DNA from: Orbicella franksi | Taxonomy: Eukaryota | Reading direction: 5' to 3' | Length of the DNA: 64,000 bases | NCBI GenBank assembly: GCA_964199315.1 | Contig: OZ116712.1 | Location: forward strand, 16,988,001 to 17,052,000 | Shown here: piece after piece, positions 18,642 through 63,866 of the stretch | How the letters are laid out: every line of letters begins with the position of its first letter | Position numbering within the stretch: the stretch's first letter is position 1 | The notes under the pieces: model-generated | The model's input: only the letters and a program-made list of their open reading frames with translations | What the model was told of the DNA's origin: nothing | Databases searched by the model: none | Program-made: the position numbers and the translations under genes

Positions 18642-19171
18642 TTACCATTTACAGTATGAATAAGCTTGCATGCAAGACGAGTTCATCGATGAGATGGGAG
18701 CCGTATAGGAATACGAGTTTCCATAGGAGTTTGTGTAGTCATAAGTCGGTGGGTACTGGTTGGAGAAGTAATTCCCCACCGAGTTGCTATAATCGCTTGA
18801 ATAACATGGCTGACCTTCGCGGATTAAAACCGGCACCGGCACAGTTCTTGGATAGAGCGAATGTGAGTCTTTGAACTCTCCAGCTTCGGTGGCTTGTTTC
18901 TTTTGCTTGTATCGGTGATTCTGGAACCATATTTTGACTTGCGTTGGCGTCAGGTTTATCATTCGCCCGAGCTGCTCTCTTTCCGGAGCTGACAAGTACC
19001 GTTGATATCTGAATCGTCTCTCCAGCTCGTAGATTTGCTGTTTGGTGAAGAGAACCCGGCGTTTTCGTTTCTTAGGAGCTTCACTGGATTCATCTCGGTT
19101 GATTTTTGGACCTTGCTGTAACACATCGGCACTGCTGCACTGCTCGTTCAACTCAGGATGTGGTCGAGCAC
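18642..19171 (-). CDS. NK2-A exon 2 (homeobox + NK2-SD)
   Basis: ttttgctcgattag|GT GCT CGA; open to the stop at 18642. Confidence 0.93.
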
Positions 19172-19907
19172 CTAATCGAGCAAAAGCGGGTAAAGGCGTT
19201 TGATGAGGCTCGATAACACCGATTAAGGGGTGATTTGGTTTTAAACTACCCGCGAGGCGGAGCTGTAGTCAAGGACTCTTGTGATCTACAAGTTTGTACT
19301 CTTAACTTAGGTAAGCTATTCAAAAATGCTTGATGCGAAGAAACGGGGCCAAACTGCGGGAAAGAATGCTTCTACAACACGCTTGTACATTAGCTTTCTT
19401 TAGATTTTTGGCATAATCATGTCCCCAACGAATATCCCTATCTACAGGTTTTCATCTCTTGTGGCTACCAAAAGTATAAAATTAAGGTGACGCTGATCTT
19501 AAGCCTGTTTCTTTTACTGCGATTTTGTTCAGGTTACGCTTTCCGAAATGTCATTCCGTGTTCTAAGTCACGAAAATCTAACGACATACTCTTTTGAGAT
19601 TTAACACAACCTGCGAGACAAACGAGCGTTCGCCTGAGTGAACTCTCTAGAAAATGGATAAATCTTAGAGGAATCTGTGGGAGTTGGGAAGAGTATTTCA
19701 AGTTACAGCCCTGTACCTACCCGAAGTGTTGTCTTGGCTTTGGCCCGATGGTGGCATCGTAGTTATTATGCAATTAGATCCTGTAGATCGATCGGGAGAG
19801 AGATTAACACCTTGGCAAATATTAGGAACCCTTGGAGTAGCGCTGGAGCAGCTTTGGAGGCACGATTCCGGGAGACTAAGAATGTTCTTCACGGAAAAAG
19901 AAGACAT
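18642..19907 (-). CDS. Nkx2.2-like: NK2-class homeobox gene A (NK2.2/vnd-like), 238 aa; exons 19907-19721 and 19171-18642
   Basis: TN motif [14 protein letters not shown]; 549-nt phase-1 GT-AG intron; homeodomain [20 protein letters not shown]...WFQNHRYK (19070-18891); NK2-[18 protein letters not shown]; Tyr-rich tail ending in W; total 717 nt. Confidence 0.93.
19721..19907 (-). CDS. NK2-A exon 1 (TN/eh1)
   Basis: ATG preceded by an in-frame TGA; donor TCG G|gtaggt. Confidence 0.88.
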
Positions 19908-19963
19908 AACGCGAGTCCCGACGGACGGTGCTCAAGATGGCTGCTGGCCTATTGACTGTATAC

Positions 19964-19974
19964 AGATCAAAGGG
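19964..19974. promoter_or_regulatory. Perfect TCF/LEF consensus site AGATCAAAGGG, ~60 bp upstream of the NK2-A ATG
   Basis: Exact match to the optimal TCF HMG-box site (CCCTTTGATCT on the gene strand). Function untested. Confidence 0.45.
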
Positions 19975-59750: not shown

Positions 59751-59970
59751 ATGGCCCAACTCAATTCAAAACAATCGATTACTTTCTCAATCGATGGTAT
59801 TCTTAGCTCTGGAAACGAAAACGAAAACCTGCGAAGAAACTCGGTGGTTTGTAGAGAAACCTCCTGCAAAATTGAAACGATTCCTTCGGGTACAAAATCG
59901 ACGACAAACGGTGAAACCAGTACTATGCTAGCGAGTCACAACAGCAAGACTAGGATGAATAAAGAATCAG
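59751..59970 (+). CDS. NK2-D exon 1 (eh1)
   Basis: AACATGG start, a strong donor TCA G|gtaagt, and a CCAAT box and GC box (CCCGCCC) upstream. Confidence 0.8.
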
Positions 59971-62900
59971 GTAAGTCTTATAAATCCCTTGCTCTACTTT
60001 ATTTTAAGAGGTTTTAATTTGTGACTGCTGTCCTAGCAAGCAAAAGCCGTAACTCACTACTTCAGAAGTGCTATGAACGTTATTCAAAGAACAGCATCTA
60101 AGGAAGGGTTCTGGTCTGACTCAATGGTCTGCTCTGGTCACTCATTTGTAGAACAGGAAACAGGAACGCACGTTTTCATCTTAAATTCTGAGCTTCATTT
60201 TCTCGTTGAAGAGTTAAAACAAGAACGCTAATCAGTGGAAATTGTCATTGTGTTTTTGTATTCCTAGTTCAAGATTAAAATTCAATTATACTGTGATGTG
60301 TTTTTTCTCGCCTGGTGAACGTATGTCGTTGACTGGCGTTTGGGCTTGTGACTGTTTATTATGGAGCCTTCGGGATATCAACTTGTGTAATAATTACTCG
60401 TCATAAAAAAGTTAACTCGATCAAGCATAATCATTATTTTAGAAGTGGAAAATGCAAATATTATTCCGTTCAAATGTGTTTGAATCCAATTATAGTGGCA
60501 TCGAGATGGATGGACCAAATTGGATAACGTTTTAACCAGATCATCTGAAGATTTCTACATCCTCTTCTTCCTGATAAATTATCATGTCTAAGGACTCAAA
60601 AGGCAGCTTTGTGTTATCGCAAAAGACCCGGATTTACACAGGAATCAAAATCCATCCTTCAACTTAGGAGTTTAATTTAAGTAATAATCGTCAAATTTGT
60701 CACGGAATTTAAGACGAAACAAATATAATTATTTGTACCAACACCAGAATTTGAAAATCTTACAAAAGTTTCATTAACAGTCCTGTGCTCTCCATTGCGG
60801 TTTTCAGAATTATTTTAACATGACTAAAAGAGTTTTTAGGTCATTTAGTTTTCATGTCTCTTGAGCTAATGCATTTCTTCATCTGAACGTGTCAACTGGC
60901 GATGTTCTTTGATAAGTTCACCCTCAGTCTCCGGAAGGATATAATTACCGTATTTACTTGAAAATAACTCTGCGTATTTAATCGATTCAGCGTTCAGCCT
61001 CTAAAATAGTGATCTGTTTTAGTTCGGCACGTATTTTTGTTGCATGAATGTGAATTGGAGCTTAGAATCAAGAAAGGAAAGTATTTAAAAAAACGTGAAG
61101 GGTTGTATTTATCGCTTTCAATCCGCAATCGAGAGCGCTGTGTGGTTAGGATTATAAGGTGAAATTATCTCCACTACGGAGACAGGAAAAACGCAACAAC
61201 TTTCTAATAATCTTATCTCAATCACTTCAATTCACACGCATTGTGTTCGGGCCAGAACGAATTGGTACAGTTTTCAGTTGCCAATACAATGAACCCGCTT
61301 AAGTTCTTGAACACTGAGTTTTAAAAGCAAAAGCTGGAATATAATTAATATGCATTGTTGAGAATTATGGAATAAACGATCATGCAATGAACATACTTGA
61401 ACCTCTTAACACAGACGAGTTCGCAAAGCCCTGACAATTTTGAGTGTGTATTTAAAAAGGGGGGCACTTATGGTCATGCAAATGAACTCGTAAAACTATT
61501 CAAAAGGAATTCAATTTATGCTACAAAACCTGAACAATTTCTGTTTTTCATGCGATTTTGACCAATCCTTGGACAGTTAGACAGAAGTTGACAGAATCCG
61601 GTCAGGCTCGGAGTCGTTCATGCTGATCTGTCTGACAACTCGGGCGCCATTTTGTCTAAACATGCTACGCTGACCCCAAGAGATTACACTCAGCGTAGAA
61701 TGGAGAGTGTAAATTTTTTAGTAGGGGGCGGAGTTGCGTTGTTGAGACACTCTTGGATCGACGCATTATCGTTTCGAGGCACGCAACGGTTTTAAAACAA
61801 AAACGATGTTCTTCATGATCATTTCTCCCACATGCCTAGACACTCCACTCATTGAAATGCAAAATTAAATCAGAATTCATTATCTATCCAAATGAGGTTC
61901 TCATCAAGTCTTGTGCCTTTGGGTTGGAAGTGTGGAAACGAAAAATGGTAGAAATGTGGTTTGGAGGATTAATTAAGTTTAAGTCTTACACATATCACTA
62001 AATCGACATGTATATGGCCCTTGCGACCAAATGTCTACTTCTACATTTTTATGTCAACGCTCAGTTTAAAGATTTTCATTAGATATAACCTGTCAGTTGT
62101 GAAATCAGGCGAAATGAATTGGTAATTGAAGAGACAAAATAAAGTGGAAGTGATTTTTCATTCCACCAGAAACAGCTGAAACAGAAAATAATTAAGAAGG
62201 GCTGAACGTACAAGTGTGCAGATCCCCTTGCTTTGGCCTACATATTCAGTACTGGCACATTATTTTTGCAGTTTAGAGCGTTGAAATGTCTGTCCTAGTT
62301 TATACCTCATGTACTCCGTTTAATCCTACTCTATATATAGTGTTCCCGAGTTGTCTTTTTTAGCTCATATGATATGAACAAAGAACAAGATTTTTCAGGA
62401 AAGAGTTTTCAACCAGAAATCGCACCTAGTTGCAAATGTATTGATGTATTCTACACAAACAAACTTTCGAAACGTGAAAGATTCCCGGGCTGTTAATGAA
62501 GTATATGTACTAAAAGTTACCGTGATCAACCTTCGTTAACAGCTGAAATAACATAGAAAATGTTCCATCTTTGAAAAAAGGTTTACCACTAACCCGGTTT
62601 GTATAAATATACAAAGAATTTAGACATGTTTTCAATTCTTGTTTTGGAAACGAGTTGAGTATTAATAAGGCGAGATTCCAGAGAATCCATTCTCAGGAAA
62701 TTACACCTTCTTCTCCTAGTGCTTTTCACTAATTTGCGGGAATTTATTTCAGTAATTAAGATTTAGCTCAGTGTCTGTAAACATTGAGGAATATTTACCT
62801 CAACTTCGGTGAATAATTGTTAATATAAACTGTATTTGTTCAGCTGTGATATGAGGCTGTGAATATCACTTATTTTTACGCGCTTTTGTCTATTGATGCA

Positions 62901-63866
62901 TACGTGCGATTGTTGAGGATGGAGATAAATGTCATAGATGTGAGGTCTTCGTCGACGTGAGTGTTGTTGGCTTAGTTTTAATTCATAGGATCACCAAACC
63001 AGAGGGGTCACACTTTTAACAATAGACTTGGTTCGCTAAAGAATGCTGCTCGCGTTCGTACTTTTCCTGCGTGCTTCTTACTTTTTTTAGTGAAAGCGCG
63101 CGTGCACCAGGTTTTGAAAGACGATTAGTGTTTAAATGGTAAATACGCCTATTTTTTAAAGTTTAGAGGTATGCGTCTGACTTCTGGGAAATGTAACACG
63201 TCGCTAGAGGCATTTTATGGCGTAGAACACTATCGTAACCTTATTTTGAAACGCTTAGTGATATACAGGTAGTTGCGGTATAATCGTGATACAATGGCCT
63301 TGGGGTAATGTTCGTGTCTATTTTTATTAGACTACAGCCTGAAAGAAACTGGCGATGCAGACAGCATGGATGCCACAAAGCCGAAATCGTCCAACCCTAA
63401 GAAAAAGAGACGTGTATTATTTTCAAAGGCTCAGGTTTTTCAATTAGAGAGTAGATTTCGCGTCCAAAAGTACCTTTCGGCCGTTGAGAGGGACCAGCTG
63501 GCGAGAATGATAAACTTAACGCCTTCGCAGGTAAAGATTTGGTTCCAGAACCATCGTTACAAGAGTCGCCAACAGATTAAACAAGACGGGCAATTTGAGG
63601 AGGATATCAAGGCACCTTGTGGAGGACACTACCATCCTGCAGAGGTCCCGTGCTTACAGCCGTGCCCTTATTACGAGCCAAGGGACTCGATCAATTCATT
63701 CCCCTCAGCCTTTATGCCTTGGGCACCGGTGTGCCCGTCTCCTTCACTGTCTCCAATGAACAGTTTCTCGATAGCAGCGCGGCAAAATCAACATTTTACC
63801 AGCTATCCTTCGTGTCAGTATGAGGCCCAGAGACAGCATCTCTATCATCCTTCAGTATTTTATTAG
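59751..63866 (+). CDS. Divergent NK2-class homeobox gene D (no NK2-SD; some NK2.1-type residues), 251 aa; exons 59751-59970 and 63331-63866
   Basis: eh1 motif ITFSIDGIL; 3360-nt phase-1 GT-AG intron; homeodomain [55 protein letters not shown] (63399-63578); total 756 nt in frame. Confidence 0.88.
63331..63866 (+). CDS. NK2-D exon 2 (homeobox)
   Basis: tatttttattag|AC TAC AGC; in frame with the homeobox; TAG at 63866. Confidence 0.93.

Follow-up and report, generated by a model that had tools for sequence, protein, structure and literature searches.

A cluster of five Nkx2.2-type homeobox genes in the stony coral Orbicella franksi and its probable history in Hexacorallia

Introduction

A stretch of 64,000 nucleotides (nt) from the coral Orbicella franksi (GenBank assembly GCA_964199315.1, contig OZ116712.1, positions 16,988,001 to 17,052,000 of the forward strand; hereafter the window) carries four NK2-class homeobox genes, here called A, B, C, and D, whose strands (A-, B-, C+, D+) and spacing make the locus look like a mirror image. 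An earlier note on this DNA had read the four genes as a symmetric unit co-regulated around the intergenic region between the head-to-head genes B and C. Is the symmetry a property of the locus, how old is the arrangement, and what has kept the genes together?

Linkage of NK2 paralogs in anthozoans is already known. A separate NK2 cluster lies on chromosome 2 in a sea anemone, Nematostella vectensis (Zimmermann et al., 2023, PMC10719294), and tightly linked or tandem, independently duplicated NK2 genes are ascribed to Acropora millepora where PMC6214176 cites Hislop et al. (2005, Dev Genes Evol 215:268). We show here that the window ends shortly before a fifth gene, E, and we put at roughly 85% the probability that it holds four of the five genes (A-, B-, C+, D+, E-) of the stony-coral copy of a hexacorallian Nkx2.2 paralog cluster. 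On this reading the paralogs arose by ancient local duplication inside Cnidaria, and at least A, B, C, and D predate the split between corals and sea anemones.

Results

Four NK2 genes in the window

In a six-frame scan, exactly four NK2-type homeodomains appeared in the window, two in minus orientation around 18.9 and 35.5 kb and two in plus orientation around 44.7 and 63.5 kb. Their Pfam Homeodomain E-values range from 1e-19 to 1e-21. Upstream of every homeodomain exon is one that begins with a TN/eh1 motif, a Groucho-binding repression motif. We modeled the genes from the best splice pairing upstream of each homeodomain exon, which in every gene was a GT..AG intron in phase 1:

18642..19907, minus strand: gene A, NK2 class; exon 1 19907-19721, exon 2 19171-18642 (stop included), 549-nt phase-1 intron, 238 amino acids
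Gene A motifs, minus strand: TN motif 19898-19878, homeodomain 19070-18891, NK2-SD 18851-18804
35236..36348, minus strand: gene B, NK2 class; exon 1 36348-36174, exon 2 35726-35236, 447-nt phase-1 intron, 221 amino acids
Gene B motifs, minus strand: TN motif 36339-36319, homeodomain 35622-35443, NK2-SD 35400-35353
43588..44894, plus strand: gene C, NK2 class; exon 1 43588-43759, exon 2 44443-44894, 683-nt phase-1 intron, 207 amino acids
Gene C motifs, plus strand: TN motif 43597-43617, homeodomain 44517-44696, no NK2-SD, a conserved C-terminal tail of its own
59751..63866, plus strand: gene D, NK2 class; exon 1 59751-59970, exon 2 63331-63866, 3,360-nt phase-1 intron, 251 amino acids
Gene D motifs, plus strand: TN motif 59784-59804, homeodomain 63399-63578, no NK2-SD

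Use of an upstream ATG at 36375 would lengthen the gene B product to 230 amino acids. Aligned with full-length orthologs taken from transcript assemblies and from annotated coral genomes, the models run across the splice junction without a gap, gene A doing so with P0041 and P0034. In addition, the gene B intron is spliced out (junction 35726/36174) in contigs of two RNA runs from different studies, X14 and X1. Both runs, labeled RNA or metatranscriptomic, also have contigs at low depth that cover the B intron and a large part of the spacer within 35101-41100; they therefore contain DNA or unspliced RNA and are no guide to where transcripts end or how strongly genes are expressed. In two polyA raw-read sets under the same species label, no reads fell on 35101-41100. 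The gaps between the genes measure 15,328 nt (A-B), 7,239 nt (B-C), and 14,856 nt (C-D), and the window is free of N runs.

Pairwise identities of the homeodomains, out of 60 residues, are 52 for A/B, 51 for B/C, 46 for A/C, 44 for C/D, and 43 for both A/D and B/D. At the DNA level, the homeobox is the only part that aligns between paralog loci, with 70-78% similarity over 70-290 nt. In all these respects the earlier note had described the locus well: the scan, Pfam, and the ortholog alignments agree with its four intact genes, their places, and their strands; its gaps (A-B 15.3 kb, B-C about 7.2 kb and head-to-head, C-D 14.9 kb) and the TN/eh1 motif, Tyr54, and common phase-1 intron of all four genes were reproduced; its hand-counted identities (A/B 52/60, B/C 51/60, D versus the others 43-44/60) match exactly; and the confinement of alignable DNA to the homeobox bears out its view that the flanks are unalignable and the duplications old.

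A fifth gene beyond the window edge

Searching the window's own genome with exon 2 of gene B identified a further NK2-class gene just beyond base 64000, in the adjoining DNA (L001):

L001:7465-8551 (G000:C15:17059465-17060551; window-equivalent 71465-72551), minus strand: gene E, NK2 class, outside the window, 227 amino acids
Gene E exons, minus strand: exon 1 L001 8551-8347, exon 2 L001 7943-7465, 403-nt phase-1 intron
63867..64000, no strand: start of the D-E spacer, the final 134 bases of the window

Gene E is intact, and along its whole length it matches P0035, an ortholog derived from transcripts, at 93% identity. It lies tail-to-tail (convergent) with D, 7,598 nt past the D stop codon, and no additional NK2 genes were found within 30 kb on either side. 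The layout is thus A-, B-, C+, D+, E-, with five two-exon NK2-class genes in about 54 kb, and the locus looks like a mirror image because the window stops before E. The symmetric four-gene unit of the earlier note is broken by this minus-strand gene, and the near-equal A-B and C-D gaps are a coincidence.

Tyr54 is present in the homeodomains of all five genes. The TN motif, FS[VI]xx[IL]L, occupies residues 4-10 in A, B, C, and E and residues 12-18 in D. The NK2-specific domain (NK2-SD; PR[TI]VPVPVL...GQPC) is confined to A, B, and E, where it follows the homeodomain after 13-15 residues. Its place is taken in C and D by different conserved sequence at the C terminus, a point absent from the earlier note; judged by homeodomain and phylogeny, both are NK2 genes from which the NK2-SD has been lost.

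The five genes belong to one cnidarian Nkx2.2 clade

We built a careful maximum-likelihood tree of 55 proteins, with support given below as bootstrap/SH-aLRT (Shimodaira–Hasegawa-like approximate likelihood ratio test). All cnidarian paralogs form one clade (99/99), which joins bilaterian Nkx2.2/vnd to the exclusion of Nkx2.1 (99/96; the tree contains a single Nkx2.1 sequence). This grouping indicates that all five genes are of NK2.2 type and were duplicated inside Cnidaria. An NK2.1-type identity of gene D was considered and is rejected by the tree, in which the cnidarian clade and Nkx2.2/vnd exclude the single Nkx2.1 sequence.

Three of the coral genes pair with Nematostella genes: A groups with Nkx2.2C (100/98), C with Nkx2.2E (100/100), and B with Nkx2.2D (83/73). 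B is the paralog closest to bilaterian Nkx2.2, and its clade also includes vnd1 of Acropora millepora (UniProt A0MV33, P0017), a coral that, going by the citation in PMC6214176, resembles this one in having linked NK2 genes. Sequence identity of the gene B protein is 87% with Stylophora Nkx-2.2a, 82% with a protein from Montipora, and 77% with A. millepora vnd1, and these named matches point to a stony coral as the source of the DNA. D falls in a clade with Nkx2.2B, an octocoral gene, and Nkx2.2A (97/91), where it joins on long branches; its best non-coral relative is the Nematostella gene 'zampogna', which is Nkx2.2B. The clade of gene E consists of stony-coral sequences only (100/99).

Gene order is conserved in corals and, in part, in sea anemones

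On Nematostella chromosome 2, a stretch of 62 kb carries Nkx2.2E(-), D(+), C(+), and A(+), and Nkx2.2B(-) is found at a distance of 1 Mb (Zimmermann et al., 2023, PMC10719294, supplementary gene table). The Nematostella loci that we retrieved from two assemblies (L011, L018, and L020) agree with this published map and place Nkx2.2E and Nkx2.2D head-to-head, 5.4 kb apart. Translated into coral terms the divergent pair and the following same-strand gene read C-, B+, A+, which when flipped is the order and orientation of coral C-B-A. The same head-to-head B/C pair occurs in Actinia tenebrosa (6.7 kb apart) and in a further anthozoan (5.7 kb apart).

Nematostella resembles the coral in having five NK2.2-type paralogs with a two-exon structure, the TN motif, and Tyr54, and the two share conserved coding and non-coding blocks. 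The D/E side differs. In Nematostella Nkx2.2B is 1 Mb off and Nkx2.2A follows Nkx2.2C, whereas the coral keeps all five genes within 54 kb, and the convergent D/E pair of the coral has no Nematostella counterpart. The gap from B to A also differs, about 31 kb in Nematostella as against 15 kb in the coral. The coral cluster is the better preserved of the two, since its five genes are still side by side.

Within corals, a second, divergent species has all five genes on a 577-kb contig as A-, B-, C+, D+, E-, spaced 14.4, 7.1, 12.2, and 7.5 kb apart; its A and D are 86% and 63% identical to those of O. franksi. For named corals, synteny is based on Pocillopora damicornis, in which the orthologs of B and E bear locus tags 16672 and 16675 on one scaffold, and on one locus of Acropora digitifera (L021, DF970840.1:497481-518628), where the E ortholog is present and no D-type homeobox was found within 10 kb on either side of it. 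Montipora, Stylophora, and Oculina yielded transcript contigs at most.

Together these data show that corals have kept an array of five genes and that a core of three, C-B-A, is conserved across Hexacorallia. The synteny comparison proposed by the earlier note accordingly gave a divided answer, positive for all five genes in the second coral and for C-B-A in Nematostella and negative for the D/E side of Nematostella. Neither loss of order and orientation in close relatives nor an assembly error, which that note had named as fatal to its reading, was found, the second coral keeping all five genes. Its description of old, linked, lineage-expanded NK2 paralogs is upheld by the tree, the synteny, and the unalignable flanks.

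Non-coding conservation is concentrated around B and C

We set the B-C spacer (7.2 kb) against its orthologs in Nematostella, Actinia, and the further anthozoan, using the A-B and C-D spacers as controls. The B-C comparison gave collinear same-strand blocks at four places, whereas the control spacers had no match against the anemone B-C spacers. These blocks, and an element downstream of C that came from a wider comparison, are the following:

36467..36651, minus strand: block upstream of B, 120-300 nt 5' of the B start codon; 77-79% over 160-180 nt versus Nematostella, Actinia, and the further anthozoan, E-values 2e-29 to 9e-36
38287..38386, no strand: distal B-C spacer block, 1.9 kb upstream of B, common to Nematostella, Actinia, and the further anthozoan; 71% over 100 nt versus Nematostella
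43194..43478, plus strand: blocks upstream of C; 43194-43233, 85-88% over 40 nt versus Nematostella and Actinia; 43368-43478, about 70% over 87-115 nt versus Actinia and the further anthozoan
47511..47576, no strand: 66-nt ultraconserved non-coding element, 2.6 kb downstream of C, present once in this genome

The block at 36467-36651, in which the four-species alignment contains TAATTA, TGTCA/TGACA, and TGTTTA-type motifs, is probably the proximal promoter module of B, and the blocks at 43194-43478 probably represent the proximal promoter or leader of C. Since most blocks lie near one start codon, they may be gene-specific. Orthologous blocks of Nematostella are situated at about 8996-9153 and 709-774 of L011.

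The 66-nt element is 95.5% identical to its Nematostella counterpart, located 1.85 kb downstream of Nkx2.2E, and 89% identical over 63 nt to that of the further anthozoan, 2.2 kb downstream of its C-type gene. This 95% exceeds the conservation of the homeobox (about 70-78%), and we read the element as a candidate enhancer-type element. Two other identities were considered. As an RNA gene the element has no Rfam family and only a weak predicted fold; a coding microexon is unlikely, both open frames being too short and the 95% nucleotide identity exceeding that of the coding homeobox.

When the two corals are compared spacer by spacer, 29.5% of B-C aligns collinearly, against 18.3% of A-B, at least 5.3% of C-D (a spacer sampled in part), and 3.7% of D-E. 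These fractions indicate that non-coding constraint is concentrated where the cluster is syntenic with Nematostella. Two of the 145 ultraconserved non-coding elements shared by Nematostella and Scolanthus (chr2:4524575-4524711 and chr2:5549081-5549188) lie about 200 nt from Nkx2.2C and Nkx2.2B (Zimmermann et al., 2023, supplement, PMC10719294), which suggests that NK2.2 paralogs are repeatedly tied to strong non-coding conservation.

Two further features of the leaders were observed. The B leader (36349-36470) and the C leader (43480-43587) are alike in mirror orientation, with 83-88% similarity over 26-35 nt between the coral C leader and the Nematostella B-type leader, and a short upstream ATG in the B leader is conserved in the four-species alignment.

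Neighboring genes and repeats

Three more ANTP-class homeobox genes are situated 3 to 16 kb before the window start, at L005:2659-2973(+), L005:6288-6821(-), and L006:4441-4971(+). Each has an eh1 motif exon and a LPWLAYTRYSPPK motif resembling Engrailed EH2. The best PDB matches of the trio are engrailed and Msx-1, and PDB and Atlas matches together include engrailed, Msx, rough, and Vax with no clear winner. The Nematostella gene table has no such trio beside the Nkx2.2 cluster (Zimmermann et al., 2023, PMC10719294). An open frame with an immunoglobulin I-set domain (Pfam E-value 1.5e-13) at 3298-3669 of the window, minus strand, places a non-homeobox gene between the trio and gene A.

On another contig (L008, G000:C2:14485001-14495000), an NK2.1/NK4-like gene at 7658-8266(-) has Tyr54, the NK2-SD, and the TN motif, and an NK3-like gene at 3712-4155(-) lies 3.5 kb from it on the same strand. 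The NK2.1/NK4-like gene is the coral's non-NK2.2 member of the NK2/3/4 group.

Short tandem arrays with a unit of about 107 nt occur at 24717-24965, 50689-50976, 53183-53405, and 56283-56583 of the window and at about 2400-2720 of L001. This family is found in the A-B, C-D, and D-E spacers and also in the cluster of the second coral (L013), and it explains all long self-matches in the region.

Discussion

We propose that the locus is the stony-coral copy of an old hexacorallian Nkx2.2 cluster in which short-range elements of its own would mostly run each gene. Elements packed around the divergent B/C pair would have kept that part together, leaving the D/E side free to rearrange. Several observations weigh against this proposal. 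In approximately unbiased (AU) tests of the branching among the five paralog clades, neither A+D (p = 0.31), B+C (0.26), nor E+Nkx2.2A (0.085) was rejected. The joins of the D group rest on long branches. A sea-anemone ortholog of gene E was not found in the sampled sequences, so that E could be coral-specific or could be the true ortholog of Nkx2.2A. The Acropora digitifera locus suggests that the five-gene layout may not be present in all corals and that the array may be looser in some. The role that we assign to the conserved blocks, finally, is drawn from sequence.

What has maintained the cluster is a question apart. It may simply have been retained because anthozoan genomes rearrange slowly at this scale, the blocks being ordinary gene-specific promoters or enhancers and the clustering functionless; we give this slightly less than an even chance. 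The rearrangement of the D/E side between coral and Nematostella, and the A. digitifera locus, where D is not within 10 kb of E, would be expected if nothing held the genes together. Published expression data from Nematostella point the same way. Nkx2.2B, which is unlinked, and Nkx2.2D, which is clustered, both mark early mesoderm, so linkage is not needed for shared expression, and the paralogs mark different cell types, Nkx2.2D gastrodermal neurons and Nkx2.2A endomesodermal muscle. Expression of Nkx2.2E, or co-expression of Nkx2.2D with Nkx2.2E, is not documented in the papers searched, and the published Nematostella data make no clear case for shared control. Against passive retention, an unbroken order and orientation of three genes, accompanied by collinear blocks, stands out.

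Alternatively, shared or interdigitated enhancers around B/C might hold the A-B-C core such that breaks are harmful, as in bilaterian genomic regulatory blocks. We hold this tentatively, at odds clearly short of even. It would account for the head-to-head B/C pair in four hexacorallian lineages at 5.4 to 7.2 kb, for at least five collinear coral-anemone non-coding blocks at 36.4-47.6 kb of the window, the 66-nt element at 95% among them, for the absence of matches in the control spacers, and for the B-C spacer being the most conserved between the two corals. On the other side, most blocks lie within 400 nt of one start codon and so look gene-specific, not shared. Sea anemones show short-range regulation, no clear topologically associating domains, and little constraint on microsynteny (Zimmermann et al., 2023, PMC10719294). 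Co-expression of the Nematostella B/C counterparts also lacks documentation, as noted above.

The comparison with known regulatory arrangements is similarly mixed. The coral locus shares with bilaterian bidirectional promoters and genomic regulatory blocks the divergent orientation, the conserved synteny, and the collinear conserved non-coding elements beside developmental transcription factor genes. Divergent starts under a bidirectional promoter are roughly 1 kb or less apart, whereas the B and C start codons are separated by 7,239 nt (5.4-6.7 kb in the other species). The coral blocks are, moreover, few, short, and mostly promoter-proximal in comparison with bilaterian ones. Of the features of a genomic regulatory block, whose elements would also act across several genes, collinear conserved non-coding blocks and conserved synteny are seen here. 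Co-regulation of the A-B-C core is plausible from its sequence features, and a symmetric four-gene regulatory unit is not supported. The stronger proposition, that the B/C pair, A, and the collinear blocks would form a cis-regulatory block kept since the coral/sea anemone split, its order held by interdigitated enhancers, we regard as unlikely.

An inverted (palindromic) duplication, in which A-B gave rise to D-C and the symmetric four-gene module came to be co-regulated around the B-C spacer, is very improbable. In its favor are the strand order A-, B-, C+, D+ and outer gaps of almost equal size (15.3 and 14.9 kb), and the AU tests do not reject A+D or B+C clades, a result that is uninformative either way. 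Yet paralog E continues the array 7.6 kb past D, and the would-be mirror partners A and D share 43/60 homeodomain residues, the joint lowest value with B/D, as against 52/60 for A/B. A has kept the NK2-SD that D lacks, and the A-B and D-C arms have no similarity in their flanks, the homeobox alone (70-78%) aligning. Nor does the symmetry that the earlier note had seen extend to other species: the second coral has outer gaps of 14.4 and 12.2 kb, and Nematostella has its D ortholog 1 Mb off and a further paralog next after the A ortholog. An assembly error, in favor of which we found nothing, is excluded by an independent coral assembly with identical gene order and strands, the B/C inversion in assemblies of three other species, and the lack of N runs.

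Vertebrate NK2 genes form the tandem pairs NKX2-1/NKX2-8 and NKX2-2/NKX2-4, each with one NK2.1-type and one NK2.2-type gene. Like the coral genes, the members of these pairs are close NK2-class neighbors apart from the main NK cluster. Unlike the vertebrate pairs, which mix NK2.1 and NK2.2, all five coral genes belong to one cnidarian NK2.2 clade with Nkx2.1 outside it.

As first described, the finding has little significance, linkage having been published and the symmetry being an effect of the window edge. What is new is the map of the five coral genes, set against the sea anemone arrangement, together with the collinear non-coding blocks around B/C, the 66-nt element conserved at 95%, and the recognition of B-C as the best-conserved spacer between two corals. 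If a cis-regulatory block does exist here, it would depart from the absence of microsynteny constraint reported for cnidarians, and the 66-nt element would be among the deepest conserved non-coding elements described within Cnidaria. The five-gene, 54-kb coral array, set beside the Nematostella cluster with one gene scattered, helps to reconstruct the ancestral hexacorallian arrangement, and the B/C blocks that align between coral and anemone are candidates that may bear on whether shared regulation ever holds cnidarian gene clusters together.

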